From: Macrostomum lignano
Taxonomy: Eukaryota
Direction: 5' to 3'
Assembly: GCA_002269645.1 (NCBI GenBank)
Contig: NIVC01000512.1
Location: 296,753 to 360,752 of the forward strand
DNA length: 64,000 bases
Part shown: positions 7,551 to 57,904 of the stretch, in pieces
Layout: the number at the start of each line of letters is the position of its first letter
How positions within the stretch are numbered: position 1 is the first letter of the stretch
Made by a program: the position numbers and the translations under genes
Notes under the pieces: generated by a model
The model's input: the letters and a program-made list of their open reading frames with translations, nothing else
Told to the model about the DNA's origin: nothing
The model's database searches: none

Positions 7551-10031
7551 TAATACACTTTATCAAAAAATTTAAACCTTGGGTTAAAATTTTTCATTTT
7601 ATTTATGAGACAAGCTTTTTCTTTAACGGTACTTTATTACCCCATCCGGATTGAATTCTCGACCTATTTTTATTTTCATCCGGGATTCTTGATCTTCATT
7701 ATGATAATGATCCGGATTTGTTGACTAGACATTTACAGTGTATACAAACAAAACACACCGAACGTGTAACATTTGAAACAGGTTTAAGATAATCCGGATC
7801 CGGATCATGAAGAACAGTCGACACTGTTTATAGGATCAAAGAAAACCAGCTAAAAGCAATAATTTTTTAAATCTGGAAGACTCCGAATAGTTCTGTTATG
7901 CTTCCAAAATAACCATAATGATAGATTTCCTTTATTTCCTAATCTGTTTTTCAGTAATCTGCTTTGTTGTGTGGGATAGATTTCCTGGCCTAGCATATCT
8001 GAATCTAATTTGCCAACTGCTCGAAGCCGTATATTTGATTAATAGGCCTATCTATGACGAGAAATAACTTATTTTAGCATGTCATAGCTTAGTTTTCGCA
8101 GAATCGCAGTAGCTAAGGGATTGTCTTTAAGGCGGGCAAAGAACAATACCAGAGCACGCACGCACGCAGAGAAGCGTGCGTTAAGCAAAGAACAGCTAGC
8201 ATTTGATAATTTAGTACTGACTGTTGTACTGTAAGCCTACTGTCATCTGTTGTACGCTCGCTTTACAACAAAATGATTTCAAAATTTCATTATTGAGATA
8301 CACGTAAAACAAGTTTTAATATAACTTTAAGTATTAATTTGGTTCAATTAGATACGTTAGATTATTAAATAAGGTAAAAATTTGAATGCCAATTTTATCT
8401 AAAATATATATAAAGTAGCTGTGTCCCACTCGTGAGGCCATTCTATCCTCGGAAAACACGGCCTTACAGACCAGTAATGAATGCAGCGCTGCATGTAGCT
8501 TTATTTTGTTGTATTGAAAACATTTGCGCACGCATGCACCAGCCTTGTATAGAGAATACAAATGACTCCAAACTCCCATTTTAGGCCTAGTTTTGTGGAT
8601 AATTGGAAGTAAAGATTGTAAAGAATCAATAAAGATTGATTTAAGGATTTTACTAAAGTTCAACAAGGTCGATAAAGTGCTACTAGGCCTATATTGAATT
8701 TTTTGTTTTGAAAAAAATTGATAGGCCTATATTGAATTTTTTTGTTTTGAAAAAAATTGATAGGCCTATATTAATTGAATTTTGAAATATTATAAACTGT
8801 TAAATTTAATTTTATACATTATATGTATAATTGTTTAATTATTATTAAACTAAATAATTTAAAATCATAAAATGTAGGCCCCTATAATACATACAACTTA
8901 AGACAAAAAAGTCTCTTCATCTTTGTATAAATTGGTAGGCCTAGAACTTTTAAATTAGGCCTATGCTTTGTCTAGGCCTGTATCAATGAAATATGATAGG
9001 CCAAAGATTTTTTTATTGTTATTTAGGAGAGAAGGGAAGGCAATCTTTTGGAATACTATCGACAACAAGTAATGTGATAATCTGCTAATCAAATTTAACA
9101 ACTGCACTTGATAAACCAATGTTTATTGTACTTTATAAGCCAATGATTATTGCACTTGATAAGCCAAGGATTATTGCACTTGATAAGACAATTATTATTG
9201 CATTTGATGTGTAAAGGATTATTTTACTAGATGAGTAAAAAGATTATTGAATTTGATGGTGCATCAATTATTGCACTAGATGATCAGGGGATGCCTGATA
9301 TTGGGAAAGCGAAAGGCTGGCTCTTAGGAGGGGGTACATGCCATCATGCTTGGGCACAACCTTGGGATTCATTTGGCCGTTTCAATTGGCAACATACACA
9401 TGTAAGTTGCTATTGGACAGAATAGTAATCACGTGACTGCTCTCAGCCAATAGCGACTTACATGTATGTGTTGCCAATAGAAACGGCCAGGTGATTCCTA
9501 AAGTTTTGCATGTATGCATGCCATCTTGGAGTATACTATCTGGGGGATGCTTGCCATTGTATTTTGGGGATTTTGCTATTGTATTTGGGGGGGGGTACTT
9601 ACTTTTGTATTTGGGTATATGTTTGCTATCTTGGAGGAAGGGGGTAAGGATACTTTTCTGCTTTTTTAATAAATACCAACATCAAAAAGTCTATGAAAGC
9701 TTAGTATATGCCTGTGTATACTAGTATATGCCAGAATGTAGCTTTGAGATAAATTTTGTATGCTAGTATACACTAGCCAATGCTTTGTATGCTTGATTAA
9801 TCTTGAATTTTCTGCATTATCGACCTTATTGCATAGGTAAGCCTTGTAAAGGATTATTCTCCTTTAGGTTAGTAAAAGCAAAATCAAGTTTATAGAAATA
9901 TAAATTTCAATACTGCATAGACACAAGCTATTGGCTTCTTTACAAACTAGCAATCATTATCTAGAACATTTTATTTAAACTTCAATTGAGTAGAGCAAGA
10001 TTAATAGCATTTTGCTGGCTCATGCTTCCAG

Positions 10032-13000
10032 ATGCGCAGTGAATCTTGGTTAATGCTGCTTTGTGCTCTGTTCTGTTCGGCATTTGTGCCAGCCCAGTTC
10101 ACGCAAGAGTGCCGTTCCGATACCTACCCACCCCCAAGCAGCTCAGAGGTGGAGTGGTTTGATGTCAGCTTAGACGAAGCTCCAATTATTCGCTGGCGCC
10201 ATGTGGTAGCGCGCCGTCAATCCCAGATACGCGACCTACTGTTGCAGTTTAAAAATTTCATTCGGCAACTGACCGGCTCGAGTGTGTACTTTAACCTTGT
10301 TGCGCGGTCTCTGACTCTTATTGCGCCCACTGTGCCGCAGCCCTACCAGGACGAAATGGTTGGCATTAGCACAGTGACTGGCATTCCATTGGGCGAGATT
10401 TTGCTTTACAATATCTTCTACGAAGCCACTAACCTGTGCACGTCTGTGTTGGCTGAGGATTCCAAGGTAGATATAATATTTACTATCTTCTTAGTGAGAC
10501 TTTCTGCTCAAGTCTGACAACACAACAAAAACAACAAAATACGCTGTCAGGATGGCAAAAGTCAGCGTCGCAGGGCGCGCTTCATGGCTTGGGCGCGAAC
10601 AAAGGCCGCGCCACCGGCAGTGTCCGGGGCGCCGGCGTCAGCCAGCAGACAGTCGACGTAACGCCGAGTTCGCGCTTGACCTCGCCGGTAGGGTGCCTGC
10701 AGTGTGAACAGCAGCACCTGCACCGGCTGTGGGCAGTACGACTCGGCGCAGATGAGATGGCCTGCGAGCTGGAGTCGCCGACGGCGCAGTAGATCGCTTG
10801 GACGTGGCAGGCCAGCGCGGCGATAGAGTGCCGCGTTGGTGACTCGCTCGACGCCGATGTTGAAGGCGGCGCGCAGCAGGCCAGCGTGCGCCGCATCGAC
10901 TTGCTGAGACTTCTCAATTCTAAGACCCATTGAAAACGATACTCTACGGCCCCAGAGTCACTATAGAAGCGTCCGAGAGTAGTTTCAGAGTCGCAGACAA
11001 TAAAGCATCTCAAATTGGCTCTTAGGCCATCCTTTTTGGTAACTTGCGCCGTGCCGTGACATCTCGTCGTTTTGGACTCGTCTAGAGTCACTTCTTTCGT
11101 ATTTACCTGTGTTATCTGCAACAACTCTGGGGTGACGCAATTGACGGAAATGGCCCGAATGCCCGATTTTTTTAAGGGTGGCCCGAATTTATGTGTAGCT
11201 AATGGGCCTGATTTTTCCTCACTAATTCTTATTCTCTATTGACGAAGTCGTGAGAAGGACAGCCTTGCAGCCTTGGATTGCTGACCATCAGGGCACTTGT
11301 TGTATCACAATCGTGTCTGGTGGCTAAAGGTTGGGCTGCTGCCAGTCTGTAGGTCTCACCAGACTCAAAGAATTTGTGCGCCAGTGCCTATGCTGTATGC
11401 CGCTGGCAGCTGGAGGAGGAAAGATGATAATAACGTAAGAAAAGGGAGAAGCTGGAGAAGAGTCACGTCAGATATCCAAAATGAAAGTAGAGCCAGCAAG
11501 AAATACACCGACTTGGAGAAGTTGGTTCAGTAGACGCCCGAGCAGATTAGGGAGAAGCTGAAGCAGAGCAACTGTTGTTGGAGACGACAAAGGCCAAGGA
11601 AGCAAAAAAGTGCGGCCCGAAAAAACGGCTACCCCTCCCTCCCACAACTGATCGGGAGCTTTTTTGTGCGTATTTTTATTATTAATTCTCATTCTTATAC
11701 CATGTACTCGTTATTGATCATCGTTTCCATCTTGTCAGGGAGTCCTTTACCACGCTCGCAATCTGGATTTCGGTCTCTTCTTTGGCTGGGACAAAGCCAA
11801 AAAGACTTGGCTCGTCACCGAGTACCTTCGGCCAACCATTGTGAACATCCGGTTCAAGAAGTCCGGCCAGACGGTGTTCATGTCCACCCACTTTGCCGGC
11901 TATGTTGGCATTCTGACCGCCCTGAAGCCGGGCAGGTTCAGCCTCACCGTGAATTCTAGAAATAGTCTCGATGGCAGCTCGACTCTCGGCATCATCGAAT
12001 GGATTCTGGGCAAGAGGGACGCCGTCTGGATGGGCTTCCTAACTCGCAGAGTCATGGAGACGGCCGACAGCTACGCCCAGGCCAAGCAGATGCTGACGGG
12101 CACCAAGATGCTGGCACCGGCCTACTTCATCTTGGGTGGCAACAGCACTATGCAGGTTCGTGAGTTACTAAAATTAGAATAATCGAAAGAGTATCCGATT
12201 TTATTAGTGACTGTATTGTCAGATAAGGCTAGCTAGGCTTCCAAGGGGCTCTATGCACTGCTAGGTTGACTCAGCTGCAGAGGGGGGGGTCCGAGCATCC
12301 GGATACAACAGGGAAAGCCCCGGATACACCCCGGCAAGCACAGGCAGCTGGTGTTGCCGTGTCCGCAGCGCGGTCCCCCTCCGGGGAGTCCAGGAGGTGG
12401 ATGGTCACTCGCCCGGTAGCTTTTAAGTAGCGGACGAGCTGGCAGAGATTCTCGGGCCTGAAAACGTCGAAGAGGTCCGAGTTTGTGCCGAGGTAGATGA
12501 GCCTGTCCTGGGTAAAGACGGGGCATTTGCAGGTGAAGTGCTCCGCATTCTCAACACCTAAGAGGCAGAATGGACATTCCTCACTGCTGATTTTTCCGTG
12601 GAGGTGACGATGACTTGCAAAACAGCCATGACCCGGGAGGGCCATGGTCACCGCCCTAGTGTCGCTGCGGCTTTACATAGGTTAGATAGAACTTTATAAT
12701 TGCTCACACAACCCTGCGGATTAGATCGAGTCTAAGAATTCTGTAGTCTAAACTTTATATATTTATAAATATTTGATATTCAAAAGTTAAAAGTCTCGAA
12801 ATTACACTGTCCGACAAGCCAAATCTACTACAAATCAAATGATTCTAATCTCCTCCCGGCTGCACTGGCGCAGGGCTGCATCATCACCCGGTCCCGAAAC
12901 GCCGCCATCGACGTGTGGGAGCGCTCGGCGGCCGCCAACCACACCTGGTACCTGCTGCAGACCAACTACGATCACTGGAAGCCACCGTTTGTGCTTGACG

Positions 13001-13194
13001 ACAGGCGAACCCCCGGCAACAAGTGCATGATGGCCAAGGGTCAGGCTAGCATGGGGTTCAAGGAGATCTTCAATGTGCTGAGCTCGATTCCTGTGCTCAA
13101 CAAGCTCACAACTTACACGGCTCTGATGCGGGTGGACACGGGAGAGTATCACAGCTACCGCCAGACCTGCAAGGACCCGTGTCCGATTTGGTAG
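10032..13194 (+). CDS. ASAH1: Acid ceramidase paralog A, 390 aa; exons 10032-10466, 11739-12155, 12874-13194
   Basis: Signal peptide, CRSDTYPP, NIFYE...CTS (nucleophile Cys), [19 protein letters not shown], DPCxxW. All introns are GT-AG phase 0 and the frame is continuous. Confidence 0.93.
10517..10925 (-). mobile_element. 5'-truncated non-LTR retrotransposon 3' fragment (post-RT region) in ASAH1-A intron 1
   Basis: Minus ORF with ...LYRRAGLPRPSDLLRRRRLQLAGHL..., typical of the LINE RT C-terminal region, followed by a (TTG)-rich tail. Confidence 0.65.
12255..12655 (-). mobile_element. Non-LTR retrotransposon 3' fragment with CCHC zinc knuckle (R1/I/Loa-like) in ASAH1-A intron 2
   Basis: Minus ORF LPGHGCFASHRH...CPFCLLGVENAEHFTCKCP. 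Confidence 0.65.
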
Positions 13195-13472
13195 ATTGGC
13201 ATTAAACTGACTCAATTTGTGCTTGTTTTATAAAGCAGATTTTAACTGCTTTGGTGCGTGGCTTTCAATTTTGTTTTTTAAATTCCATTTTCACTAACTT
13301 CCTGCATTCAGAGTTTTTTAATGCACTTTTACAATATTTTCTATCTTCCGCAATAGTCAGTTGTCTTTGATCGCTTTTAAAAAATATAATATTTTGTAAG
13401 CTCGATTGAAGCTTTGCTTGTCACTATAATAAACTATTTTGTTGATCCTGATTTTTTAATACTTGCTAGCTG

Positions 13473-14043
13473 ATTCAAAGACTTAGGGAGCGGAGAGGCA
13501 GATTCAAGGACTTAGGGAGCGGAGAGGCAGATTCAAGGACTGAGAGAGCGGAGAGGCAGATTCAAAGACTGAGGGAGCGGAGAGGCAGATTCAAGGACTG
13601 AGGGAGCGGAGGGGCAGATTCAAGGACACTGAGGGAGCGGAGAGGCAGATTCAAGGACACTGAGGGAGCGGAGAGGCAAATTCAAGGACTGAGGGAGCGG
13701 AGAGGCAGATTCAAGGACTGAGAGAGCGGAGAGACAGGTTCAAGGACTGAGGGAGCGGAGAGGCAGATTCAAGGACACCGAGGAAGCGGAGAGGCAGATT
13801 CAAGGACACCGAGGGAGCGGAGAGGCAGATTCAAGGACTGAGGGAGCGGAGAGGCAGATTCAAGGACACTGAGGGAGCGGAGAGGCAGATTCAAGGACAC
13901 TGAGGGAGCGGAGAGGCAGATTCAAGGACACTGAGGGAGCGGAGAGGTAGATTCAAGGACACTGAGGGAGCGGAGAGGCAGATTCAAGGACACTGAGGGA
14001 GCGGAGAGGCAAATTCAAGGACTGAGGGAGCGGAGAGGCAGCG
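13473..14043. repeat. 29/31-bp purine-rich minisatellite (gagggagcggagaggcagattcaaggact), ~19 copies, upstream of SNRPA1
   Basis: Direct inspection. Confidence 0.95.
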
Positions 14044-14181
14044 GAGGGAACTGGGGAAGTAGCCAGACAAGGAGGAATTTAGACAAACTAACAACTAGTG
14101 GATGCTTGTGCTAAATTATTAAATCTATTATTTCCCGATTGCAGCTCATTGATTTGTCCACTGATTGCATTGCCAACAAGC

Positions 14182-15612
14182 ATGAAGCTGACGCCCGAGC
14201 TTATACAGAACTCGGTGCAGACCACTAATCCGCTGGGTGACCGCGAACTAGATCTGCGAGGATACAAGGTGGCTTTGTTAGAGAATCTCAGCGCTACTCT
14301 GGACCAGTTTGATACCATCGACCTCACAGATAATGAGGTATATATAATGCTTCCATTGCAACACTATCATTGATGTACTCTCAGCTTGATGCATCACTCT
14401 CTGTTCGTTGTTTGGCCTAGCTGATATGCATGTACTCTCCAATCTCACTTTCTCTTCCTCTTAACAAACTGCCGGAACGGAGAGACAGATTCTTCCTCTA
14501 ACAAACTGCCATTCTTCCTCAAACAAACTGCTATTCTTTCCCTAACAAACTGCCATTCTTCCTCAAACAAACTGCTATTCTTTCCCTAACAAACTGCCAT
14601 TCTTCCTCAAACAAACTGCTATTCTTTCCCTAACAAACTGTCATTCTTTCCCTAACAATCTGCCATTCTTCCTCAAACAAACTGCCATTCTTCCTTCAAC
14701 AAACTGCCATTCTTCCTCTAACAAACTACCATTCTTTCCCTAACAAACTGTCATTCTTTCCCTAACAATCTGCCATTCTTCCTCTAACAAACTACCATTC
14801 TTCACCTAACAAACTACCATTCTTCACCTAACAAACTACCATTCTTCACCTAACAAACTACCATTCTTCACCTAACAAACTACCATTCTTCACCTAACAA
14901 ACTACCATTCTTCACCTAACAAACTACCATTCTTCACCTAACAAACTGCCATTCTTACTGCCCTAACAAACGCATTCTTCCCACGAATCGGCAGATCCGC
15001 AAGCTGGACGGCTTCCCCCACCTGCCCCGGCTGGCAAACCTGATGCTGAACAATAACAAGGTGATGCGCATTGGCGACGGCCTTTCAAGCAGCCTGCCGC
15101 GCCTGTCGACCCTCCTGCTGACCAACAACTGCCTGCAGGAGCTGGCGGACTTGGAGCCCCTGACCGCCCTGAAGCGGCTGCGCTTCCTGTCCCTGCTGAA
15201 GAACCCCGTCTGCAGCCGGCGCAACTACCGCCTACACGTGGTGCACAAGCTGCCCAGTCTGCGCTTCCTCGACTTTCGACGCATCACCGACGCCGAACGT
15301 CGACAAGCGGCCGCGCTGTTTACCTCCGGTGGCGTCGGGGATGTCGCCGATAAATCGGCGGCGAGCTTGAAGTCCAAGCCTGCCAAGACTTTCACGCCCG
15401 GAGCGCCAGTGCCGGCGGCTGCTGCCGCTGCGTCGGCGCCTGTCTCGGCAGCCGGCGGCCCGACTTCCGCTGACCTGCTGGCTGTGCGCGAGGCGATCCG
15501 GCGGGCAAACACCCTGGACGAGGTGGACCGGCTCAACCGGCTGCTCACTACAGGAAACTATGCCGGCTTTGCTAAGACTGGCGGCGGAGGCGGCGGAGAG
15601 AAGCAGGCCTGA
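14182..15612 (+). CDS. SNRPA1: U2 snRNP protein A', 257 aa; exons 14182-14337 and 14995-15612
   Basis: MKLTPELIQNS...RELDLRGYK...ENLSATLDQFDTIDLTDNE|IRKLDGFPHLPRL...LRFLDFRRI...AIRRANTLDEVDRLNRLL. GT-AG phase 0 intron. Confidence 0.95.
14462..14975 (+). repeat. 22-bp intronic minisatellite (ctaacaaactaccattcttcac), ~23 copies, AG-free on the sense strand
   Basis: No AG dinucleotide between 14490 and the acceptor at 14993-14994. Many units contain CTAAC. Confidence 0.95.
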
Positions 15613-15719
15613 CTGTCTGTTGTTATTGCATTGCTCTGTCTGCCGTGACGCGTTCTGTACTCTGCTTTTCTATTAGTCAATTGTTTCATTCATTGGCCTC
15701 ATCAGCATGTTTAATTAGG

Positions 15720-16280
15720 TGCTCCATGGATGGCTCCTTGCCCCTCACTGAAGCCATGGATGGGTCCTTTGGTCATTCCCCACTCACTGAAGCCATGGAT
15801 GGGTTCTTTAATTGGTCAGCCATTTCCCCTCACTGAAGCCATGGATGGCTCCTTTGGTCATTCCCCACTCACTGAAGCCATGGATGGGTCCTTTAATTAG
15901 TCAGCCATTCCCCCTCACTGAAGCCATAGATGGGTCCTTTGGTCATTCCCGACTCACTGAAGCCATGGATGGGTCCTTTAATTGGTCAGCCATTCCCCCT
16001 CACTGAAGCCATGGATGGGTTCTTTAATTGGTCAGCCATTCCCCCTCACTGAAGCCATGGATGGCTCCTTTAATTGGTCAGCCATTCCCCCTCACTGAAG
16101 CCATGGATGGGTCCTTTAATTGGTCAGCCATTCCCCCTCACTGAAGCCATGGATGGGTCCTTTAATTGGTCAGCCATTCCCCCTCACTGAAGCCATGGAT
16201 GGGTCCTTTAATTGGTCAGCCATTCCCCCTCACTGAAGCCATGGATGGCTCCTTTAATTGGTCAGCCATTCCCCCTCCCT
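15720..16280. repeat. 37- to 46-bp minisatellite (ctcactgaagccatggatgggtcctttaattggtcagccattcccc) just 3' of SNRPA1
   Basis: Direct inspection; about 13 units. Confidence 0.93.
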
Positions 16281-16691
16281 GAAGAAATAAAGGTGATCCC
16301 TTGGTCGGCCATTGTGAAAGAATTGGGATTGGGATATTGGCGAAGTGCGGTTTTTATTAGGCAAAATAAATTTTATACTATGCTGCACAAAAAGACGCTG
16401 ACGCATTCATTCATTTCCTACCTACCGTTTAATACTGTGGATGACGCATTTCCTTCGTGTCGGTGGGCTCTTGAAAGAGTCGAAGCGATTTGTGTTTTTT
16501 TCCAGTTTGATCACATTGGCTGGATTTGACTTGTTCCTTTTTTCTTAAATTAGTATCTTATTCTTAGTTAAACTCATCGTAACAATTAGGTAATTAGCTT
16601 GATGAATGTCGTAAATAGGACTTTACGCATCTGAATTTCAAATGTCAATTTTGTTGTTAAATAAAAAAATATTTTTCATTCTTTCAACTTA

Positions 16692-17040
16692 GGGCGGCCG
16701 TAGCCCAGTGGTCCAGCGCGGCGCTCTGGTGTGCCAGCGGCCCAGGCTCGATTCCCAGTGCAGTCACATTAATTTGGGGCTAAATTGGAATCTCGGCTTG
16801 GCTCTGCTCGTGCAATCAACGCCCTTGAGGGTCAACCCCTATGGCACAGTGAAGTGTACATGCCTAACGAATAAAGTTAGGGCCGCTGTGCACTCCTGTG
16901 TGTGCCTGTGCGTATGACTGCGTACGTATCCGCGCGCTTGTGTGCCTGCTCAGGGGAGTCAGCGGAATGGGCAGTAATGCCTCTCGCCGGTTGTGTGACC
17001 ATGTCGCTTAAATGCACACAGACCCTGTCTCTATTAATAA
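16692..17040 (+). mobile_element. tRNA-derived SINE
   Basis: Pol III A box (tagcccagtgg) and B-box-like (ggctcgattccc) in a ~73-nt tRNA-like head, followed by an unrelated body. Confidence 0.55.
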
Positions 17041-17304
17041 ATGCTTCAATTTAACCTTAAAAGAATTAGGATACTAATGTTCTTGATTTAAGAACACAAA
17101 GTTACAGATTAGAGAAAGAAAGAAATTGTAGGAAATCTTCAAATAATCAATCATAGGATATCTATATAAATGACTTATTACAGATTATTAAATACTAAAA
17201 TTTTCAGCCAACGTTGAGCCCGTTGTCAGGGGACAATTAAAAACTTCAAAGAATCCACTGAACTGAAATTTCCTGACTAACGAAAGCATCGATAAAAAGT
17301 AGGC

Positions 17305-18230
17305 ATGGCATCCGGTGTATCAGTTGATCCTCAGGTTGAAGAGCACTTCAAAGCCATCAAGATCGGGCACAGGTATCGCTACATTGTGTTTCACATAGTC
17401 AACGATTCCACCATCACCACGGAGCGCATTGTTGAGGAGAGCAGCTACGAAGATTTCGTTGATTCCTTGCCTAGAAACGATTGTCGCTACATTATTTACG
17501 ATTACGCCTACACGCTGGAGGATGGCGGCAAGCGGGAGAAGCTGCTGTTTATTCACTGGGCACCGGATGTGTGCAAAATTCGCTGCAAAATGATCTACGC
17601 CTCATCCAAGGTTTGTAGTGCTAAGCTCTTAAGCTTCTTGATTTATACTTTAAAACACTTATGGTTAGCAAATATCAGTTTTGTTCTTAATAAATTGTTC
17701 CGGTCGGTTGCTATGGTGATTGGTCGTGGTTGCTATGGAGATTAGTGATGGTTGCTATGGTGGTTCGTCATGGTTGCTATGGTGATTGGTCATGATTGCT
17801 ATGGTAATTGGTCGTTGCTGTTATCGTGATTGGTAATGGTTGCTATGGTGATCGGTCATGGTTGCTATGGTAATTGGTCATGGTTGCTATGGTAATTGGT
17901 CATGGTTGCTATGCTGATTGGTCATGGTTGCTATCGCAATTGGTCCTTGTATCTATGGTCATTAGGCCCGGTAGCAAGTATATTAGGAAATATTACGCTA
18001 TTTAGATTGAAGCAAAGTATCGTAGAACAATCCAAGTGGTAAGTCAATGTGGGTTGCTATGGTAAATTTTTTCAAACGAAGCTTAACAATCGCATGATTA
18101 TAATTTTCAGGACGCCATCAAGCACAAGCTGCGCGGCGTGGTGGAGATTCAGGCCAACGATATCAGTGAAGTGGCCGAGGACTGCATCCGCGATCGGCTG
18201 AAGGCCGCCGGAGCCTCCGGCGACAAGTGA
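17305..18230 (+). CDS. CFL: Cofilin/ADF, 141 aa; exons 17305-17610 and 18111-18230
   Basis: MASGVSV...YRYIVF...CRYIIYD...KLLFIHWAPD...KMIYASSK|DAIKHKL...EIQAND. GT-AG phase 0 intron. Confidence 0.93.
17700..17960 (+). repeat. 22-bp minisatellite (ggttgctatggtgattggtcat) in the cofilin intron
   Basis: Direct inspection. Confidence 0.9.
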
Positions 18231-19494
18231 AACCTGTTGGTTGATTTATTGACAAATCTATTGCAGAATGAAAGGATAGAATTAACTGGTTGGCATGCAG
18301 TTGTGCACCTACGGATAAGGGGCTTACCTTTATTTGGACTCTTCTTTACAGTTGATTTCTTGTATTGAAAGCGATACTTTATTTCTTGCTTGTCAAATAT
18401 TTTCCAACACTAAAAACCAAGATAGAGTGAAGCATATCGAGTACATTGCGCTACTACGCATTGCATGCCTTCTCAAAAGCTTTCCGAGTACTCCCATTGT
18501 CCCAGATACGAGTGCACACTCGAAATTTTTTGCTTGATGATAATTAGATACACCCTGCTGCATGGCTTTCTACTTACTTTTTGAAGTGACAGTGGACAGT
18601 AGTAGTATAGTTAGTACTTGCTGTGCTAAATTTATTTTATTCTCCTCACCTCTCACAGTAAGGCATCTATTTGCATCAATTTTTTACAGTCCTTTTCTAT
18701 TCGACTATTCAGCAGTATTTTTTTCAGTCCTTTTTAGTGTTGCTATTTATCACTTTCAATTTCTAGTCGTTTTTTTGTTTTATTTTCCCCGCCCACCTAC
18801 CTGCCGTCTTTGAAGTGCTAATGCTCGCTAATAACCTGGCTAAAATAGTACACGCCTTTGATTTACCTAATTCTACTCAAGCATCGAGTATCTGTCATGT
18901 TTCTGTTTGATTACTGAAATTTATTAATTAGTGAGCATATAGGAGGCAATTAAATTTGGTTTGCCTTTTTTACAGTGACGATGCGCCAGTCGGCAGTTGA
19001 GTAGAGCTCATATGAGTAGCTGCTTTACTGACGGATGTGCAATACACCCTATCTGAAGCGTTTGATTTTTGCCTTTTTCATTTGAACCGTTTTAGAGGCT
19101 TTAGAGGCCAGTATCCATAGTCTAGTGGTCTTGGTCTAGCTTATTAATCTGGCGCCATTTAGGGACTTGTCTGGCTACCGGGTCGGGAAACGAACCCGCT
19201 TCCACCCAAAAAGCTTAGTTCCCAGTTCTCATACTTTGCAGGTACAGGTAACAGTAATAAGTAGACCGTATTAAGTATAGTTGGCATACTTAGTATATTG
19301 TAATGACTAGCACACTTTTTGGGACTTAAATGAAGTTTTAAAAGTATAATCAACATTTCATCACAGTTTTGCACAAGTGCTGTGTTAATTGCATACATAA
19401 ATTCGCATGATTCACAGTTAACCAATGGCCCTGATACGCTTAGACATCAAGGCAGACAATTAAACGGCCTGTTGCGCATTTTTTCGTCACTTTG

Positions 19495-20846
19495 TACATC
19501 GGCTGTCCGGAAAGTCGTGAGATTGTATTTAAAAAAACCAGTCAGAACTATCAGAAAACACGATAACAGCACTAGTTGGTAATGTAATCTCCCCTTGCGT
19601 TGATTACAGCTTGGCAATGGTCAACGAGTCGCTGAACCTCTCTTTTCAAGCAATCTTCGTCAAGGCCTCTTGCCCATTGCAATGCAGCTTCTCGAACTTC
19701 ATTGTGGTCGCTGAACACTCGCCTGGAGAAATCAGTCTTCATCTAAATGAACAAAAAATGGTCGCACAAATTGAAGTCTGGGCCGTAAGGACTCTGAAAC
19801 ACCAGCTGAACTCCACGGGACTCCATGTACTGCTGCACAGAACGGGCTACGTGAGGTCGCGCATTGTCCCACTGCCAAAGAACATCCGACAGATGAATTG
19901 GCCTTGACCTGAGAGTACGCCATAGATCTCCGGTGTGCCGAATGAACTCAACTATGCCATTTGCATCAGCAGTTTGCTTTGGGGCTGTGGATTCAATGGA
20001 GAAGCGCTTGTTTGGAGTAAAAGCAACCAGAAGCATTGTCTTTGCATTGCCGACTGAGTGCCTGACAACCTAGGGCCGATGATCCCCTTGGCCAAGCCAG
20101 CACCTGTTGTTTTGCTTTGTGCCAGTGTTGTTCAGGTACTCCCACGTCTCATCTTCCACCACGTACTTGTCGCAAAAGTTTTTCATGCCCTCGTAAAAAA
20201 GCCCGCGAATTTGCTTGGCACAATTGATGCGAGCAGTCTTGTTCTCCTCGGATAGAGCATGCGGAACCCAGACAGCAGAAACGTTTCGAAGGTGCAAATC
20301 CTCAGTCACAATTTCGCGCACTGTTGTTTTTCCAACTTCCAAAAAGTCAGCGAGGTCTCGGACACTAACTTTTGGATCCTCTTCAATAAGAGCTCGGCAG
20401 GTTTCGATCAGTTCCGCTGTCCTTGTTGACCGTGGCCGGCCAGTCCGAGGAGCTGAGACCGGGGGAAATGCTTCGTCACGGAACTTCGAATACCATCTGT
20501 AAACCGTTGACTGACCTGGTGCAGCATCTCCATAAACTTTGAGCAGCTCGTCATGGCAGCTGATAGCGGAGATTCCAAGACGGTATCTAGCATAGGCATA
20601 ACCCTGGAAGTCTTCCATTTTGAAGAACTCGCTGTCAAAATTTTCAAGCTTGATCACCGCGTTGCATTTGTTATTGAGCACTTTATACTGAGCTCGCCCC
20701 TGCCCCCCAATTTTGCTACTAGAATAACAAGAATTTTCACCATTGACATATATGAGTCTATTATTGAAAATTTATGTGTGCCACGTCAACAGCTTGCTGC
20801 TTTCTTGCTTAATTGACACATTCTCATGACTTTCCGGACAGAAGTA
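19495..20846 (-). mobile_element. Full-length mariner (DD34D) element, ~1.35 kb
   Basis: Inverted repeats ctgtccggaaagtcgtgaga and tctcatgactttccggacag match at 19/20. TA lies at both outer ends. The element contains a transposase. Confidence 0.9.
19572..20618 (-). pseudogene. Mariner transposase (~348 codons) with two in-frame TAG stops at 20070-20072 and 19743-19745
   Basis: HTH region, WVPH, VEDETW, WDNARPH, SPYGPDFNLCD, GDYIT*. The frame is continuous across both stops. Confidence 0.88.
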
Positions 20847-21689
20847 CATCAGTAGTGCAATTTGATGGCACTTTAAACGAGCTACTACTACTAATTAAGA
20901 CGCTAAAACAAGTTTACGTGTACCAAGTAAACCTATACTAAACTCTACTCTAATTTTTATCAAATGAACGGGGTATTTTTATGTTCATTATGTGCTTACA
21001 AGTGCTAAAATGTTCGAATTCGCACCAGATTTCTCATTGACTTTGCTTGTCTTACAATGCTCTCAAAAACCTGTTTAATAAGAACAACGTCGGTGAAATT
21101 TGAGCAAGAAGAGAGCAATTGCTCATTTCCAATAGTGCATATGCTCCGGAACACAGTTTTGTGACCTCTAAAACAGACGCGGTGGCTGACAGGCGTGTCA
21201 TGTGCTTTCATGCAGCTTACTTTGAAAACCTAGATGTACACTTTGTACATCAATTGGTCTAAATAATCAGTCCATACTTTGTGTACGACGGTCAGATGTG
21301 AAAGTTCGTGCTTCATGGACGGATTATCATCTGTTTTAGTTGGGCGTACGCGCTCATTATCGAGAGTGATAGCATCACCTGGCAGAGATGAAAGCAGCCT
21401 ATGGGCCTTGCCAATCATAAGTTTATTTATGTTAGAATAGTTCATATATAGGGTCCATAATAATGCCTTATCAACTGCAATTTGCGTCATATTTCAAAGT
21501 GACTTTCTCTCTTACCGTGTGCGTGCCTGGTGCAGTTGGTTTTATCTCTAGCTTTATCAAGTAAGTGGCCGCAGCCAGTATAGCGAACTTGTCTGTTATA
21601 GTTGTGGCATAAAACTGACCCAACCCACCAGAGAGCCCGGGTGCAAACTTAGGTTTGGCGTACTGTTTCTATCTCAGAGTTTCGCAGCC

Positions 21690-24600
21690 ATGACTTGTCA
21701 AAGCCGCCTCACGCCACTGCTGCTGCTGCTGCTGCTGGCTTGTCTGGCAGCGAACAGCCAGGCTCAGATTCCGACTCAGTGCCGGTCGGACGCCTACCCG
21801 CCGCCTGCCGATTCCGAGATCGATTGGGTTGATGTCGACCTTGACGAGGCTCCCCTCACCCGCTGGCGCAACGTGGTGGCCCACCGCGGGCCCCAGCTGC
21901 GCGCCCTCATCGCCCAGTTCAGGATCTTCGTGCGCAACATGACCGGCTCCGAACTGCTCATCAATCTGGTGGACAAAGACCTGACGCCGCTGGCGCACAC
22001 TCTGCCGCAGCCTTTCCGCGACGAGATTGTCGGCATCGCCAATATGACCGGCATTCCGCTGGGCGAGGTCACTCTCTACAACATCTTCTACGAGATCTTC
22101 ACCGTGTGCACTTCTATCGTGGCTGAGGATCAGAAAGTGAGCACATTTCTGCTTTCTGCTTTCAGTTTCTGGGAAGGGGTTTTAGAGTTTTTCATGATCG
22201 GTGCCAAAATTTTCAAGTTCCCAAGCTAGCACCTCTGATGGGACTTGTAGTTAACTAGCGTTGATATGCATATAATATATGTGTGCTTCAAAAGATACTT
22301 TTATCAAATGTTTTAAATGGGTTTCCCTCCAGCTAGGGGGGCAGGTGAGGAGGCAAGCTAGGAAGCTGAGGCGAGGAGGCAAAGGGGAGCTGAGGCGAGG
22401 CGAGACAAGGTTGAGCTTCATTCTCACTGAACGCAAGTATATATATAATTTCTACAATGCACTTCATTGGTGTTCGCTTCACACAAAAGGATCTTTTACT
22501 GCCGAATTAAGGTCAATTCACATGAAAACTTGGAATAAATAATGCCAATCTCGAATTTTATTGCGAATCACTATGATTTGCATTCTAAGATCCAATGCTA
22601 AGAATAGGATATAATTCTGGGTGCTCACAGACATTTTAATGATCACTCAGTGCATTTTGAAACACTCGGACCATTAGGGAGTCCTTTACCACGCTCGCAA
22701 TCTGGACTTCGGCCTGTTCCTCGGCTGGGACCTCGCCAACAGCACCTGGCTCATCACCGAGTACCTCCGTCCGGCCATTGTGAACATCCGGTTCAAGAAG
22801 TCCGGCCAGACGGTGTTCATGTCGACCAACTTTGCCGGCTATGTTGGCATTCTGACCGCCCTGAAGCCGGGCAGGTTCAGCCTCACCATGAACGAGAGAT
22901 TCAACGCTGACGGCGGCTACATCGGCGTTATCGAATGGATTCTGGGCAAGCGGGACGCCGTCTGGATGGGCTTCCTGACTCGCAGCGTCATGGAGACGGC
23001 CGACAGCTACGCCCAGGCCAAGCAGATGCTGACGGGCACCAAGATGCTGGCACCGGCCTACTTCATCTTGGGTGGCAACAGCACTATGCAGGTTCGGAAA
23101 GTAATTGTTCAACTGGTTGCCACAATCTATCCTGTATCGTGATATGGGTTCGAGGCTGCTGAATCCGTTTATTTAAATTCGTCTTTTTGAATAAGAAAGT
23201 TTATGAAAGAATGATAAACGTACCGTACAGGTTGGCAATGGCAACGATGTATCTCGCAAGCTATTACATTTGACAGCAAAGCTCCATGGGCAATTTGGTT
23301 GGTATAACTTTTGTCGCGCCATGTGGAACAGTGGGCATGCAACACGGAATGGCCCATTAGAGTTCTATGCCCAAGCGTTTGAATTAACTCGAGAAAGTAA
23401 GCCATGATAACTCAGTTTGTCACGCAATATGGAACGATGAGACAGAATAGAAGAGGAACAGTTTGAGTTTTATTTACAGAAAAAATAGAAACTGGCATTC
23501 AATAAAGCATATTTTAAGTCCCAAATCGAAAGCATCAAAATTTACGAGAGGTCAACTTTTTAAACAGATGTCGCTGCAAACACGGTTCAAACAATCTGTT
23601 GCAGCGCAACTCCCAGCCAGCGCACTTGTCAACAGCCTCTCGCTCGAGTAACATGAATCCCCACTGTGCATGCGTCACTCCCTCAAGATTCTTGCTGAAG
23701 TTCTGTTCCAATGGTTCTCTGGGATCTTCGTACCCTACGGTGGAAATTTGTGCCATCCATAAAAAACCCTGTTTCCGTTAGGGTCCAGATGATCAGTCTG
23801 CTAAGTGGCAGCTTCCAAACCTGCCGGCTTGTTTCAATGTTGACCGAACGCGGTGAACAGAATAATTGGATACTCTTAAAAGCACTGATACCCTTCATCA
23901 ACAGCCCACGTAGTGCAAGGCGGTGACGATACGCTGTCGATCGCGTACTGAAATTTCTGGACCCATTAGAGCTTAAATCGATTAACCGATAGAAAATGAA
24001 AGCATCTTGTTGTCTCTGTGAAAAGCTCAAACCGTTCTTTATATGTATATGGCTTTCTTTCTCGAGTTAATTCAAACGCTTGGCCATGGAACTCCAGTGG
24101 ACCATTCCGTTTTGCATGCCCAAGTTGAGAACTAACAAAGCTGATGATGAAATACGGAAGCACCTTTAGCAGCTTATGCAAGTGAATCCCTTTGCAAATT
24201 TAAAACAGATTTGTGCTGATGTCTATGGCCGAATTATCAACTTGCTTGTCTTTTTTCCGCCTATGTCTATGCCTTAACTGTCAACTTGGCTGACACAAGC
24301 CAATCCAAAGTGAGAATCCTGCCTACGCTGACTGCGAAGGGCCTGGCTGCGTGCAGCCTTAGTCTATGGGCCATAGACAATAAAGGACAAGCAAAGTGAT
24401 AAAAAGCCATCCAATATGAGAATCGATTGGTCTATGCGTCGTATTCTTTTATTTTTATACCTTCTGAGCCATATGACTAGCCAATAGCTTGAACGGAATA
24501 ACGGAAACAGGAACACACTGGATGATGTCTTTTTAAAACTTTGCTTGTCCTTTATAGTCTATGGCTCATAGACTAGGCTGGACGCAGCCCGGCCCTTCGT

Positions 24601-25133
24601 ATTCAGCGTAGGCAGGATTCTCACATTGGATGGCTTTTTATCACTTTGCTTGTCCTTTATTGTCTATGGCCCATAGACTAAGGCTGCACGCAGCCAGGCC
24701 CTTCGCAGTCAGCGTAGGCAGGATTCTCACTTTGGATGGCTTTATTCTCAGTTAGGCTGACAAAACCAATACTGTCCTCTGCATGAGCTGCCCCATCACA
24801 CTCCATAAAAAGGGCTGCATCATCACCCGGTCCCGAGACGACGCCATCGACGTGTGGGAGCGCTCGGCGGCCGCCAACCACACCTGGTACCTGCTGCAGA
24901 CCAACTACGATCACTGGAAGCCGCCGTTTGTGCTTGACGACAGGCGAACCCCCGGCAACAAGTGCATGATGGCCAAGGGTCAGGCTAGCATGGGGTTCAA
25001 GGAGATCTTCAATGTGCTGAGCTCGATTCCTGTGCTCAACAAGCTCACAACTTACACGGCTCTGATGCGGGTGGACACGGGAGAGTATCACAGCTACCGC
25101 CAGACCTGCAAGGACCCGTGCGCGCCCTGGTAG
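21690..25133 (+). CDS. ASAH1: Acid ceramidase paralog B, 393 aa; exons 21690-22136, 22678-23091, 24813-25133
   Basis: Signal peptide, [50 protein letters not shown] phase 0 introns at the same positions as in paralog A. Confidence 0.95.
23334..24120. mobile_element. Element bounded by ~70-bp imperfect inverted repeats (23334-23403 and 24052-24120)
   Basis: ggcatgcaacacggaatggcccattagagttctatgcccaagcgtttgaattaactcgagaaag recurs as a reverse complement with a few mismatches. Confidence 0.6.
24298..24740. mobile_element. Foldback/MITE-like element with ~125-bp near-perfect inverted arms
   Basis: 24298-24424 is the near-exact reverse complement of 24614-24740. Internal partial copies and GTCTATGG/CCATAGAC motifs are present. 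Confidence 0.8.
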
Positions 25134-26065: not shown

Positions 26066-27150
26066 TAGATGATGCAGGTACCTATAGACCTGCTGCAGTT
26101 TCTGAATAGATGATGCAGGTACCTAGAGACCTGTTGCAGTTTCTGAGATGCAGGTACCTAGAGACCTGCTGCAGTTTCTGAATAGATGATGCAGGTACCT
26201 ATAGACCTGCTGCAGTTTCTGAATAGATGATGCAGGTACCTAGAGACCTGCTGCAGTTTCTGAATAGATGATGCAGGTACCTATAGACCTGCTGCAGTTT
26301 CTGAATAGATGATGCAGGTACCTAGAGACCTGCTGCAGTTTCTGAATAGATGATGCAGGTACCTAGAGACCTGCTGCCGTTTCTGAATAGATGATGCAGG
26401 TACCTATAGACCTGCTGCAGTTTCTGAATAGATGATGCAGGTACCTAGAGACCTGTTGCAGTTTCTGAGATGCAGGTACCTAGAGACCTGCTGCAGTTTC
26501 TGAATAGATGATGCAGGTACCTAGAGACCTGCTGCAGTTTCTGAATAGATGATGCAGGTACCTAGAGACCTGCTGCAGTTTCTGAATAGATGATGCAGGT
26601 ACCTAGAGACCTGCTGCCGTTTCTGAATAGATGATGCAGGTACCTATAGACCTGCTGCAGTTTCTGAATAGATGATGCAGGTACCTAGAGACCTGCTGCC
26701 GTTTCTGAATAGATGATGCAGGTACCTATAGACCTGCTGCAGTTTCTGAATAGATGATGCAGGTACCTAGAGACCAGTTGCAGTTTCTGAGATGCAGGTA
26801 CCTAGAGACCTGCTGCAGTTTCTGAATAGATGATGCAGGTACCTAGAGACCTGCTGCAGTTTCTGAATAGATGATGCAGGTACCTAGAGACCTGCTGCCG
26901 TTTCTGAATAGATGATGCAGGTACCTATAGACCTGCTGCAGTTTCTGAATAGATGATGCAGGTACCTAGAGACCTGTTGCAGTTTCTGAGATGCAGGTAC
27001 CTAGAGACCTGCTGCAGTTTCTGAATAGATGATGCAGGTACCTATAGACCTGCTGCAGTTTCTGAATAGATGATGCAGGTACTTATAGACCTGCTGCAGT
27101 TTCTGAATAGATGATGCAGGTACCTAGAGGCCTGGTTGCAGTTTCTGAAG
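26066..27150. repeat. 41-bp minisatellite (gatgatgcaggtacctagagacctgctgcagtttctgaata), ~27 copies with shorter variants
   Basis: Direct inspection. Each unit has an internal GCAGGT...ACCTGC stem. Confidence 0.96.
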
Positions 27151-28120: not shown

Positions 28121-31100
28121 ATGGAGCCAACTCCCAAGCCGATTTGTCAGCTGATCGCTGGCAAGACCGTGTGCAGCTACCACGGCTCGCTTCTGCTTAC
28201 CCAGCTGCTGCTCAACATTACAACGCCGCGACAGTCGGCCGCGGTCACCCCGGCCATCAGGGGCGAGCATGGCAAAGAGAATCACGTCGATTTAGTGGAC
28301 GACCTCAGTAGCTACATCGGGCGTGAGCTGGGTTCTGGTGAATCGCTGCATTTTTGGGCCTGCATAGCACCAGAATGATTTATGTTGAATGAGCCTTCAA
28401 GCAAGTTTAGATGATTTACTAGCAATCTGGCGCCCAATAAGCGAGAGACAAAAATTATTTATGAGAATCCTTTAAAATGAGAGCACATTTTCTGTAAAGC
28501 ATTCCTATTTCCGTTTAAAAAATCACCTTTTCGAGTAAAATTGTTCAAAGAATGGGATAAAATTTTAGGAATAACTACATGTAGCTCGTAGATTCTGACC
28601 TCTCAGCCTCGATATCTCAGCATTTCCCCCAGTAAGCCTCGACATCTCAAAATCCCCCCAGTAAGCCTCGACATCTCAGCAATTCCCCCAGTAAGCCTCG
28701 ACATCTCAGCAATTCCCCCAGTAAGCCTCGACATCTCAGCAATTCCCCCAGTAAGCCTCGACATCTCAGCAATTCCCCCAGTAAGCCTCGATATCTCAGC
28801 AATTCCCCCAGTAAGCCTCGACATCTCAGCAATTCCCCCAGTAAGCCTCGACATCTCAGCAATTCCCCCAGTAAGCCTCGACGTCTCAGCAATTTCCCCA
28901 GTAAGCCTCGATATCTCAGCAATTTCCCCAGTAAGCCTCGATATCTCAGCAATTCCCCCAGTAAGCCTTGACCTCTCAGCAATTCCCCCAGTAAGCCTCG
29001 ATATCTCAGCAATTCCCCCAGTAAGCCTTGACCTCTCAGCAATTCTCCAAGTAAGCAATGACGTCTCGGCAATTTTCCTAGTGAGCCTAGACGGATAGCC
29101 TAATTTATTTAGCATCGGGGGTCACGTTACTGATAGATTAAGGATCAAGTGACCCAGCAAACTAGTCAATAGTCTGAGGGTCTTTTAGTGCAACTCCAGT
29201 ACAGCTGATCTTATTTTTGTCTTTCTTGGTTCAGTACCAGCTGTGCAAAGCCACTCGATACTCGATAGGGAGAAGATACCAGGGATGCCGCAGGTCAAAG
29301 ACCGAACCATTTCTCGACGATATTGTCTGCGCATTCCAGGCAATCCCAACTCTGGAGGCGGACGGTCGGCTGGCGGAAAACCAATCAGCTTCACGACGAA
29401 CACTGAGGTGACTTTTGGGTGATGATAGGGGTGGAGGGAGGAGGAACGACAAGAAAGTTGAGGCTTAAATCTACCTGTCCAAGTGTTAGCCAGTTTCATA
29501 AGGCATCCTAGGGGAGCCATGTGCTACTGCCACTCCAACTGTATCCTTCTATCGATGCTGGAGTCCCGTTCCAGCAACCCACCTTTCCCTAATTGATGCG
29601 CTTAGCCCCAGTGAAAAGTCTAAGAAATTGTCCTTCCTTCGATGCTGGCCATTAACAAGTAGCTAAAACACGTAGCTTTCATGTAATTTTTTTGTTGTAA
29701 ACAACTTTTGCGTCTTTCTAGCCGGCCCTGACGACTCCTAGCTCGCGGATGTACATTACTCCCATGGTGCGCAGGGGAGAAAAGGTAAACTGCTTCACTT
29801 CTGGGACTGTAAAATAACGTGTAACTTAGTTGCAATTTTCTCACCTGAATTCGCAGGGTGACACAGGTGCACCGGGACCTCCGGGCGTGTGTCCGGACTG
29901 CCGACAGTTAGATTTCAAAGGAGATCCGGTGAGCCCATCTCTGCCAGGTGTCTGAATGAAGCAATCCGTTCACAACAAGCAATTCTCTGTTGCATAACTT
30001 TTGCAGGGACCGCCTGGACCAAGAGGACCACCCGGATGGAAGGTAAAACTAGTGCTCAATTTATAGGGCAGCTGAAGCAGAAGGCCGATGCACTCACAAT
30101 TCGTGCGAATTCTGCTGGGGGAGTTTTCAGTTAATTAGCACTGAGTTCTCAACATCTCAACCTAACGGTGCACTCGCAAGTTTATCAAGTTAGTTTCTCA
30201 TTAATTTCTATTGAAGACAATCCTTGCAAAATTCGTAAAATCCTTGCAAAATTTGCAAACTGCATTTCGAGCGGTGCCGCTCTCCGATAGATATTTGAAA
30301 CTTTTCTTCATAAACTTGTGAAACAACCTTGTCAAACTGGCTTGTAAAGTTTCGAGCTAGTGATGAAGTTTCGAGCTTGTGAATTTTCGAGCTTGTAAAG
30401 TTTCGAACTTGTGATGAAGTTTCGAGCTTGTAAAGTTTCGAGCTTGTGGAGTTTCGAGCTTGTGAAGTTTCGAGCTTGTGAAGTTTCGAGCTTGTGATGA
30501 AGTTTCGAGCTTGTGGAGTTTCGAGCTTGTGAAGTTTCGAGCTAGTGATGAAGTTTCGAGCTTGTGAAGTTTCGAGCTTGTAAAGTTTCGAGCTTGTGGA
30601 GTTTCGAGCTTGTGAAGTTTCGAGCTTGTGATGAAGTTTCGAGCTTGTGAAGTTTCGAGCTTGTGAAGTTTCGAGCTTGTGATGAAGTTTCGAGCTTGTG
30701 AAGTTTCGAGCTTGTAAAGTTTCGAGCTTGTAAAGTTTCGAGCTTGTCAAGTTTCGAACTTGTGATGAAGTTTCGAGCTTGTAAAGTTTCGAGCTTGTGA
30801 AGTTTCGAGCTTGTAAAGTTTCGAGCTTGTGAAGTTTCGAGCTTATAAAGTTTCGAGCTTGTAAAGTTTCGAGCTTGTGAAGTTTCGAGCTTGTGAAGTT
30901 TCAAGCTTGTGAAGTTTCGAGCTTGTGATGAAGTTTCGAGCTTGTGAAGTTTCAAGCTTGTGAAGTTTCAAGCTTGTGAAGTTTCGAGCTTGTGAAACGC
31001 CCATGGCCGAAACACGCACTTACTCTATTTGCAATTCCAGATGTTGAAATATTTTCAATTCAGTATTTAGCAGCGAAATATGCACTATTTGCCACTGCAG

Positions 31101-50230: not shown

Positions 50231-50243
50231 GCGAGGTTTGTAA

Positions 50244-52560: not shown

Positions 52561-53261
52561 GAAAAATGTGCATAACATTGTTTACAGGTATTTTCGGACA
52601 ACCCCATATTTTCAAAACCTTCCCTTTGAGTTTTTGATCATAGACAATCGACGTGACTTGACTATCTTTGGCTAAACTCAAATCAAACCCTACGTGACGC
52701 GTAGGTACCGATTTAAACCCGGAAAAATATCGCGAAAAAGGCAACAGACGACAAACTCATCGAGTTCTTGACAGTCTAGAAATAGTTTCAACTGGAACCC
52801 TACAAATGATTTTCTGAATCTAAAAGTTTCTGGGCCTTTCTATAGCTAGATACAAGCGGGAGCAGTTCCGTACTATAGCAACTATATCTATTGCTTTTTT
52901 GTGCTCCTACGAGTGTACAAGTTGACAGCTAATGTACTGGGCATGGCCTTAGCTACGCTTTTTAGTGCTAGAACGTTGCAGACCGGAATAGTGCAAATCC
53001 CAGAGGGAAAAGGAATTAGTATAGGGCTCGATGAAGCGCGAAATTTTCTTTTGCCTCAAGCTGACGGCTGCTCGCACCAGTGAGTCTGAGAGTCGGCAAG
53101 CGCTGCCCGACAAACCGAAACTCGAATCGAAATCTGAAACTTCATTTCCGCCCTTGGCGGCCAATCCGAAATTCTTTGAACTGCAGCTTTTATCGAGAGC
53201 TTGTTTTTTATTCTAGTTTTCAGGCTGCTAAAGTCTATTGGGAATAGTTGAGACTTGAAGG

Positions 53262-53965: not shown

Positions 53966-54358
53966 ATGCTCTGAGGCGGAGTGAGACAGTACATGTAAAT
54001 TGACCCTGGGACTGAGCCAGCTACGAACTATAGCCAGTTAAATGCAAGGCAAGCGCAAAAGTCATGAAGAATGATGCATTATGATGGAAATTGGAGATTT
54101 ACATGCAAATTCGATAAGCGAGTATATTAGTGATAGAAAGCCGGTATACGGACAACTGAAGTACAAGGACGCTACACTGATATTCTTAGAAACGAGCTGG
54201 ACGGGGGAAAGGAACGCGTGTTTATCGCATCGCAAGTGCATATTGTACGTAACGGAGAACACCATAGCGCTGAATGGGGTTTCGCCCATAGACAAATTCG
54301 GATTATTCGTATTGGAGCTGTTAAAAATGTGGACAAAACTGGACTGTAAGGAGGCAAC

Positions 54359-57881: not shown

Positions 57882-57904
57882 TTCAAATTTAAGCTCGAAT
57901 GACG

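Follow-up and report, generated by a model that had tools for sequence, protein, structure and literature searches.

Probable gene conversion between tandem acid ceramidase genes of Macrostomum lignano, with short patches of old sequence spared

Introduction

How can two genes look old in one part and almost newly copied in another? The question is raised by a 64,000-nucleotide stretch of the flatworm Macrostomum lignano (assembly GCA_002269645.1, contig NIVC01000512.1, forward-strand positions 296,753 to 360,752), referred to below as the window, whose own numbering is used throughout. Over 23,456 bp it matched contig NIVC01000512.1 of assembly Mlig_3_7 at 100% identity. The window holds two acid ceramidase genes of three exons each, gene A (10032-13194, + strand, 390 aa), a divergent paralog, and gene B (21690-25133, + strand, 393 aa), a canonical one. 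A sequence-only reading of the locus had proposed that ongoing gene conversion keeps the two genes alike while selection protects diverged patches that set specificity. The comparisons described here indicate that A and B are very probably old duplicates, most of whose last two exons have been homogenised. The reason why short patches within those exons escaped is less certain and is weighed below.

Divergence and identity along the two genes

Gene A encodes PAA81805.1 (P0123, Mlig_3_7) and gene B encodes PAA81808.1 (P0124). The genes lie in tandem on one strand, with 11.7 kb from start codon to start codon. The exons of A are at 10032-10466, 11739-12155 and 12874-13194 and those of B at 21690-22136, 22678-23091 and 24813-25133, all on the + strand. 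Both reading frames are intact and all introns are GT..AG and of phase 0, at two positions common to both genes.

The signal peptide and the alpha subunit are encoded in exon 1 of A (10032-10466), together with the start of the beta subunit, 10 residues that include the catalytic Cys136. This exon is 65% identical to exon 1 of B in nucleotides and 56-58% in amino acids. The alpha/beta junction (YEATNL before the catalytic C in A, YEIFTV in B), which had been listed as a diverged island, is in fact the 3′ end of this exon, which is unconverted throughout. Introns and flanks of the two genes showed no similarity to each other (word size 7, E below 0.01). Intron 1 of A (10467-11738, + strand, 1272 nt) is 98% identical between haplotypes and intron 2 (12156-12873, + strand, 718 nt) 93-95% identical; introns are thus 93-99% identical between haplotypes and unrelated between paralogs. 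Similarity between A and B ends at the splice sites, apart from the atypical donor GTTCG that opens intron 2 in both genes.

Over exons 2 and 3, 608 nt are homogenised at 98.7% identity, and the remainder consists of two islands (70 and 45 nt) and a diverged C-terminal patch of 12 nt. Exon 2 as a whole is 90.4% identical and is composed of three blocks at 98-100% with the two islands between them, in agreement with the near-identity claimed for most of it. All of the following segments are on the + strand. Converted block 1 (11739-11765; B 22678-22704) is 27 nt at 100% identity and encodes GVLYHARNL, including the Arg159 equivalent. Island 1 (11766-11835; B 22705-22774) is 70 nt at 75.7% identity with synonymous divergence (dS) of ∼1.0; it encodes FGWDKAKKTW in A and a different 10-residue sequence in B. 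Converted block 2 (11836-11948; B 22775-22887) is 113 nt at 98.2% identity, with fixed differences at 11885 and 11889. Island 2 (11949-11993; B 22888-22929) is 45 nt in A and 42 nt in B, with a 3-nt indel and ∼42% identity. It encodes VNSRNSLDGSSTLGI in A and 14 other residues in B. Converted block 3a (11994-12155; B 22930-23091) is 162 nt at 98.1% identity and reaches the last base of exon 2.

Exon 3 is 321 nt in both genes and carries 8 differences (12898, 12902, 12984, 13182, 13183, 13186, 13187 and 13188), exactly as had been counted by eye. Five of the eight fall within the three codons preceding the terminal Trp. The core at 12903-13181 (279 nt) contains a single change, a synonymous CCA/CCG. 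Converted block 3b (12874-13179; B 24813-25118) is 306 nt at 99.0% identity with a dS of 0.015, and none of its A/B differences is fixed across three haplotypes. The unconverted C-terminal patch follows, with the stop codon, at 13180-13194 (B patch 25119-25130); its 12 nt hold 5 differences and encode CPIW in A and CAPW in B.

Evidence for gene conversion

Comparison coding sequences were those of the B-type orthologs Bsp1 and Bsp2 (P0133 and P0134) from two other Macrostomum species, assembled from public RNA-seq. dS was calculated by the Nei-Gojobori method and trees were built by bootstrapped neighbor joining (NJ).

In exon 1 A and B are separated by a dS of 1.285, and in the islands dS ranges from 1.0 to saturated. 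Over all converted blocks it is 0.029 (4 synonymous differences in 139 sites). In the same blocks B differs from its ortholog Bsp1 by a dS of 0.635, which shows that synonymous sites there can change. The longest stretch of agreement between A and B covers 95 polymorphic sites in a row; in 100,000 column permutations the maximum was 39, and 95 was never attained. Quartets for the converted blocks supported the grouping of A with B at 13:0:0, 14:1:0 and 18:0:0. Those for exon 1 gave no such signal (9:9:5), and 14-15 sites put A outside B and its ortholog. The NJ trees disagree accordingly. For exon 1, B, Bsp1 and Bsp2 formed a clade at 98% bootstrap from which A was excluded, and exon 1 of A is 65.1% identical to M. 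lignano B and 65.3% identical to Bsp1. For the converted beta subunit, A and B paired at 100% bootstrap. Residues specific to M. lignano are common to A and B and absent from both orthologs (FKKSGQTV vs YLKGGKPL).

The likeness of paralogs within the species thus exceeds that of orthologs in some segments only, with incongruent trees, the pattern by which interlocus conversion is recognised. The checks put forward with the sequence-only reading, namely per-segment dS, a GENECONV-type run test and segment trees with orthologs from related species, all came out in favor of conversion, and uniform dS was not seen (0.03 in the converted blocks against 1.29 in exon 1 and saturation in the islands). 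The near-identity of exons 2 and 3 is with high probability the product of interlocus (non-allelic) gene conversion and not of constraint or recent duplication. An old duplication is indicated because, in exon 1 and three short patches, synonymous sites are saturated and the base composition of A is distinct, and because the introns stand at the same positions yet cannot be aligned.

Direction and timing of conversion

The GC content at third codon positions (GC3) of A is 0.60-0.61 in exon 1 and the islands (0.61 in exon 1) and 0.84 in the converted blocks. For B it is 0.85 in the converted blocks, 0.81-0.90 in the counterparts of the segments native to A, and 0.81 in exon 1 (21690-22136), which clusters with the orthologs of the two other species. 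The converted sequence lies at a normal B-orthologous distance from Bsp1. Because A is B-like in GC3 in the converted blocks, and because of this distance, B appears to have been the main donor, and we infer that conversion has run mostly from B to A.

The comparison took in three haplotypes or homeologs, namely the window (H1), L008/L001 (H2) and L010/L009. The islands are kept in all three. Across them no site of the exon-3 core is fixed for different states in A and B, and exon-3 columns 27 and 111 and exon-2 column 275 are polymorphic in both paralogs, where a rough estimate under independent mutation gives ∼0.02 shared polymorphic sites. These two observations, the missing fixed differences and the shared polymorphisms, indicate that conversion is still ongoing, as had been proposed. 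B of H2 (P0001) carries A-type states, including an Asp to Ala replacement, which point to at least one recent A-to-B event. Since introns are 93-99% identical between haplotypes, the last homogenisation would be about as recent as the divergence of the haplotypes.

A mechanism can be outlined on this basis. A break within an exon would be repaired from the paralog, and strand pairing would extend only as far as A and B are similar. Because pairing needs similarity, tracts would stop where they meet an unalignable intron or a strongly diverged patch.

As a separate observation, H1 and H2 (window 9032-14194 vs L008) grow more divergent along gene A: the upstream region differs by 0.3% and exon 1 by 0%, intron 1 and exon 2 by 1.7% and 1.9%, and intron 2 by 5%, with ∼6% downstream. 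The rise suggests a recombination or homeolog-exchange breakpoint inside the gene.

Enzyme family and position of the spared patches

Pfam CBAH (1.6e-22 and 1.3e-27) and NAAA-beta (above cutoff) domains were found in both A and B. The best match among solved structures is acid ceramidase 5u81 (E = 6.5e-119), with NAAA 6dxw at only 1.2e-50. Judged from these matches, A and B are ASAH1-type acid ceramidases (cysteine Ntn-hydrolases of the CBAH superfamily) and not NAAA. In the alignment of A with human chain 5u7z_B, C136, R152, D155, the Asn within QTNYD and the first Arg of DDRRTP are aligned, and the same holds for B. Both genes therefore keep the catalytic Cys at the alpha/beta cleavage site and the equivalents of Arg159, Asp162, Asn320 and Arg333. 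The disulfide cysteines C31/C340 and C388/C392 (4 of 4 aligned) are also present in both. At the Glu225 position B has Glu (NER) and A has Ser (NSR). Among 139 fetched sequences this residue is Glu in 110 and Gly in one; Ser occurs only in A and in a third M. lignano paralog, C.

The patches were mapped in human ASAH1 numbering by alignment and with passages of Gebai et al., 2018 (PMC5915598). Those passages describe residues 135-142 as the gate helix and cleavage site, with the last turn of helix alpha5 opening the channel as it swings outward. In A the end of exon 1 corresponds to human 139-142, the last alpha5 turn and the P1-P2 autocleavage residues. L167 and W169, I171 and W176 of the L4-6 loop are described as a hydrophobic, membrane-facing surface needed for liposome activity, and island 1 corresponds to L167 and this loop. 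The backbone of Glu225 forms part of the oxyanion hole and its side chain contacts the ceramide head group; island 2 includes the Glu225 position. For the C-terminal patch, the passages searched describe only a Cys388/Cys392 disulfide turn, and none of them puts the patch in the channel. The claim that the diverged patches lie at the channel or membrane surface was accordingly upheld for three of them (junction, L4-6 loop and Glu225 loop) and not for the C-terminus.

The same three patches coincide with residues conserved among orthologs. The entropy of island 2 across 114 metazoan orthologs is 0.49, the lowest of any segment. The replacements in A (F140T, T141N, V142L, N173K, M223V, E225S, F227N, G232S, Y233T and P394I, human numbering) each affect a residue held by 85-100% of the 114 orthologs. 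Three N-glycosylation sequons of B are lost in A. Low constraint was rejected as the cause of the islands, which sit in the most conserved segments of the family.

Paralog C is ∼51% identical to A and is present in two copies 31 kb apart (L006 3001-5238 and L007 3001-5237, NIVC01000393.1). It has a single intron, at a position unlike those of A and B, and its Glu225 loop is one residue longer. C was considered as donor of the NSR island of A and rejected on its Ser codon (AGC vs TCT), an island nucleotide identity of 33% and the other intron structure. By these codons, Ser at the Glu225 position of C and A is a case of convergence by independent gain and not of donation.

Alternative explanations

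Exon-limited identity could also have arisen in other ways. If B had been duplicated only recently and the protein encoded by exon 1 and a few patches had then diverged very rapidly, by adaptation or under relaxed constraint, no conversion would be needed; both the common intron positions and the lack of a detected A-type ortholog outside M. lignano would fit. This scenario is extremely improbable in view of a dS of 1.0-2.1 in exon 1 and the islands against 0.03 elsewhere, and of a GC3 gap of 0.2-0.3 confined to those same segments. Nor does it account for paralog introns and flanks that cannot be aligned though 93-99% conserved between haplotypes, or for an exon 1 of A as far from B as from Bsp1. 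The contig is PacBio-based, the genome is repeat-rich and neopolyploid, and single-base indel errors are visible in sister contigs, all of which could invite an artefact in which reads of one paralog corrected the other or the contig is chimeric. That such an artefact made the mosaic is barely credible, as A and B lie on one contig with unique genes between them, and the mosaic recurs with different private variants in NIVC01000511.1 (twice), in NIVC01005020.1 and in models P0130 and P0132 of the independent ML2 assembly. Polishing, moreover, cannot raise 65% identity to 99% and yet spare in-frame islands of 45-70 nt. The stop of identity at three splice junctions would be explained if spliced B transcripts had been copied as RNA or complementary DNA (cDNA) templates. 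One run of A = B crosses the exon 2/3 junction (coding positions 750-876), and the genome contains transposon-derived sequence (intron repeats and a nearby transposase remnant). Such templating is nevertheless very unlikely, because intron 2 is retained at the same position in both genes, where a junction-crossing cDNA tract would have deleted it, and because its first 5 nt (GTTCG) are also shared. Exon-limited, DNA-templated tracts between genes with unalignable introns are, besides, already documented (PMC3728101).

If conversion is accepted, the persistence of the patches has to be explained. A neutral mosaic, in which clustered substitutions and the 3-nt indel block pairing and A is a drifting, relaxed copy partly patched by B, is a serious contender though short of probable. 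It agrees with a dN/dS below 1 in the islands and exon 1, without sign of positive selection, with a protein evolution in exon 1 about six times faster in A than in B (dN 0.33 vs 0.05), and with the lower GC3 of A, which is expected if codon selection or biased conversion was relaxed. Small divergence clusters can stop conversion (Willett 2013, PMC3728101). Drift is harder to reconcile with the state of A itself: its reading frame and splice sites are intact, it retains the catalytic Cys, the four disulfide cysteines and the equivalents of Arg159, Asp162, Asn320 and Arg333, and the A models P0122, P0123 and P0128 (full-length) and the A part of ML2 P0130 are all uninterrupted. The dN/dS ratio (omega) on the A branch is ∼0.3 and not 1, the islands lie in the family's most conserved segments and not in free-drifting loops, and they are untouched in every haplotype although the flanking tracts are at least 98% identical and still exchanging. 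A stronger adaptive account can be put forward tentatively and is somewhat doubtful. A would be a neofunctionalised ceramidase-like amidase whose four patches have long been held by selection (dS above 1) while B continually overwrote the rest of the beta subunit. On the same tentative footing, the four would be the gate/cleavage junction, a lysine-rich L4-6 loop without its conserved glycosylation site, the loop in which Ser replaces Glu225, and the C-terminus. That selection protects the patches is plausible and close to evenly balanced with a neutral mismatch barrier. It is no more than plausible, since clustered mismatches and an indel alone can block conversion and leave the same pattern. 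Most likely, A is a functionally shifted ceramidase-like amidase whose patches persist by selection, by a mismatch barrier or by both.

Several points count against this interpretation. The island dN/dS of ∼0.15-0.3 is below 1 with saturated dS, and by a rough estimate two islands would fall on functional sites by chance about once in ten cases. No A-type ortholog was retrieved outside M. lignano, in databases with thin Macrostomum coverage and, for the exon-1 protein of A, in an index of cluster representatives where A itself is clustered under B. The age of the duplication therefore relies on saturated dS, composition and an NJ tree prone to long-branch effects, and synonymous branch lengths for three taxa depart from a clock (A 0.99, B 0.30, Bsp1 0.67). 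That identity runs precisely up to the splice site at three junctions is a little out of the ordinary for conversion from a genomic DNA template. Polishing of a neopolyploid PacBio assembly could also have erased a few real differences in blocks that were already similar. Of the sequence-only reading as a whole, conversion and its continuation were thus borne out, and selection protecting the patches was not demonstrated. Three results go beyond it: the mainly B-to-A direction, the nature of the islands as old sequence and not merely divergent protein, and the Glu225 to Ser replacement in A.

Organisation of the locus

Between A and B lie a U2 small nuclear ribonucleoprotein A′-like (U2A′) gene with an LRR_9 domain (14149-15612, + strand) and a cofilin/ADF gene (17305-18230, + strand). 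A degenerate mariner/Tc1-like transposase remnant (19743-20681, - strand; HTH_48, HTH_32 and weak DDE_3) lies between cofilin and B. The intronic or antisense open reading frames at 10562-11124, 12271-12651 and 24678-25091 gave no Pfam match, and an impression that the intronic ones stem from retroelements found no confirmation.

Several gene models join these genes. In the ML2 assembly, P0130 and P0132 (1173 aa) merge A, U2A′, cofilin and B into single proteins, and A and U2A′ carry one common Mlig_3_7 transcript identifier, Mlig023193. The A-to-B fusions may reflect read-through or polycistronic transcription in a trans-splicing species, or over-merging by the gene predictor. Model P0125 (L009 672-12876, at the start of NIVC01000511.1) begins in exon 2 of A and continues in exons 2-3 of B. 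It was rejected as a true A/B recombinant, as it covers 12 kb across U2A′ and cofilin, switches paralog inside an identical stretch of exon 2 and lies at a contig end; it is an annotation artefact of the converted sequence.

About 17 minisatellite arrays, of period 14-54 nt, occupy about a quarter of the window. They lie at 1197-2727, 13481-14041, 14489-14982, 15774-16284, 26066-27149 and 28605-29092, continue at 30340-30996, 33712-35302, 37727-39891, 41694-43030 and 44072-44678, and extend to 45359-46174, 50243-52567, 53261-53976, 59028-60227 and 60709-61410. One is immediately 3′ of A, one is inside the U2A′ gene span and one is ∼0.9 kb 3′ of B. AT skew is extreme, at 0.8, in the array at 37727-39891, whose period is 14. 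The satellite at 30340-30996 (16-nt period) has an inverted copy 27 kb downstream at 57903-58319, with 82-88% identity. Positions 241-318 and 955-1031 of B intron 2 (23092-24812) have matches in inverted orientation in L008, L001, L010 and L009, and positions 588-663 of A intron 1 match other places in L008 and L010 at 84%. These short repeated or inverted intron elements look like insertions resembling miniature inverted-repeat transposable elements.

Significance and comparison with known systems

Partial concerted evolution is visible at this locus in four independent ways, namely dS, tree incongruence, base composition and shared polymorphism, and the three homeologous or allelic copies of a neopolyploid serve as natural replicates. 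The homogenised exons have already produced the chimeric model P0125 and a single 90% protein cluster for A and B. They will confuse read mapping, expression counts and the design of RNA interference and in situ probes in this model flatworm. If the patches are kept by function, they would mark the residues through which access to substrate or membrane is tuned in acid ceramidase, an enzyme linked to human disease. Were A indeed neofunctionalised, the pair would be a natural chimera experiment marking the specificity determinants of the ASAH1 fold.

Human and mammalian ASAH1 (PDB 5U7Z, 5U81, 5U84 and 6MHM) are ∼50-55% identical to the flatworm genes over their full length, as read by eye from the alignments. 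The signal peptide and the alpha/beta autocleavage site ahead of the catalytic Cys, as predicted from alignment, are common to ASAH1, A and B. Gene A departs from ASAH1 in the Glu225 loop, where Ser replaces Glu225 and one residue is inserted, in the L4-6 loop, which contains three lysines, and in the loss of the conserved Asn173 sequon; ahead of the cleavage site it has A-T-N-L in place of the conserved V/I-F-T-V. The human ASAH1 gene has 14 exons, against three in each flatworm gene. NAAA has the fold and the Pfam domains (CBAH and NAAA-beta) in common with A and B, but its match is far weaker (1e-50 vs 1e-119).

Partial concerted evolution with islands of divergence is a well-known phenomenon (PMC2720389, PMC3728101), and the A/B pair is an ordinary further case. 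Long-lasting concerted evolution is described for the mammalian pairs BMP8A/B, DDX19A/B and TUBG1/2 (PMC2720389), which likewise combine an old duplication with concert in only part of the gene. Detection there and here used similarity of paralogs above that of orthologs, GENECONV-type runs and GC3. The tracts of those pairs include introns, a search criterion of that study, whereas the introns of A and B are wholly excluded. Interlocus conversion with divergence islands in tandem paralogs has also been described for GOT1 of a copepod, Tigriopus californicus (Willett 2013, PMC3728101). In GOT1, as here, exons are homogenised, introns cannot be aligned, islands persist within exons and variants pass between the paralogs. 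The M. lignano pair differs from GOT1 in gene family and phylum, in a strong B-to-A bias and a clear compositional signature, and in islands that lie on the structurally characterised sites of an enzyme.

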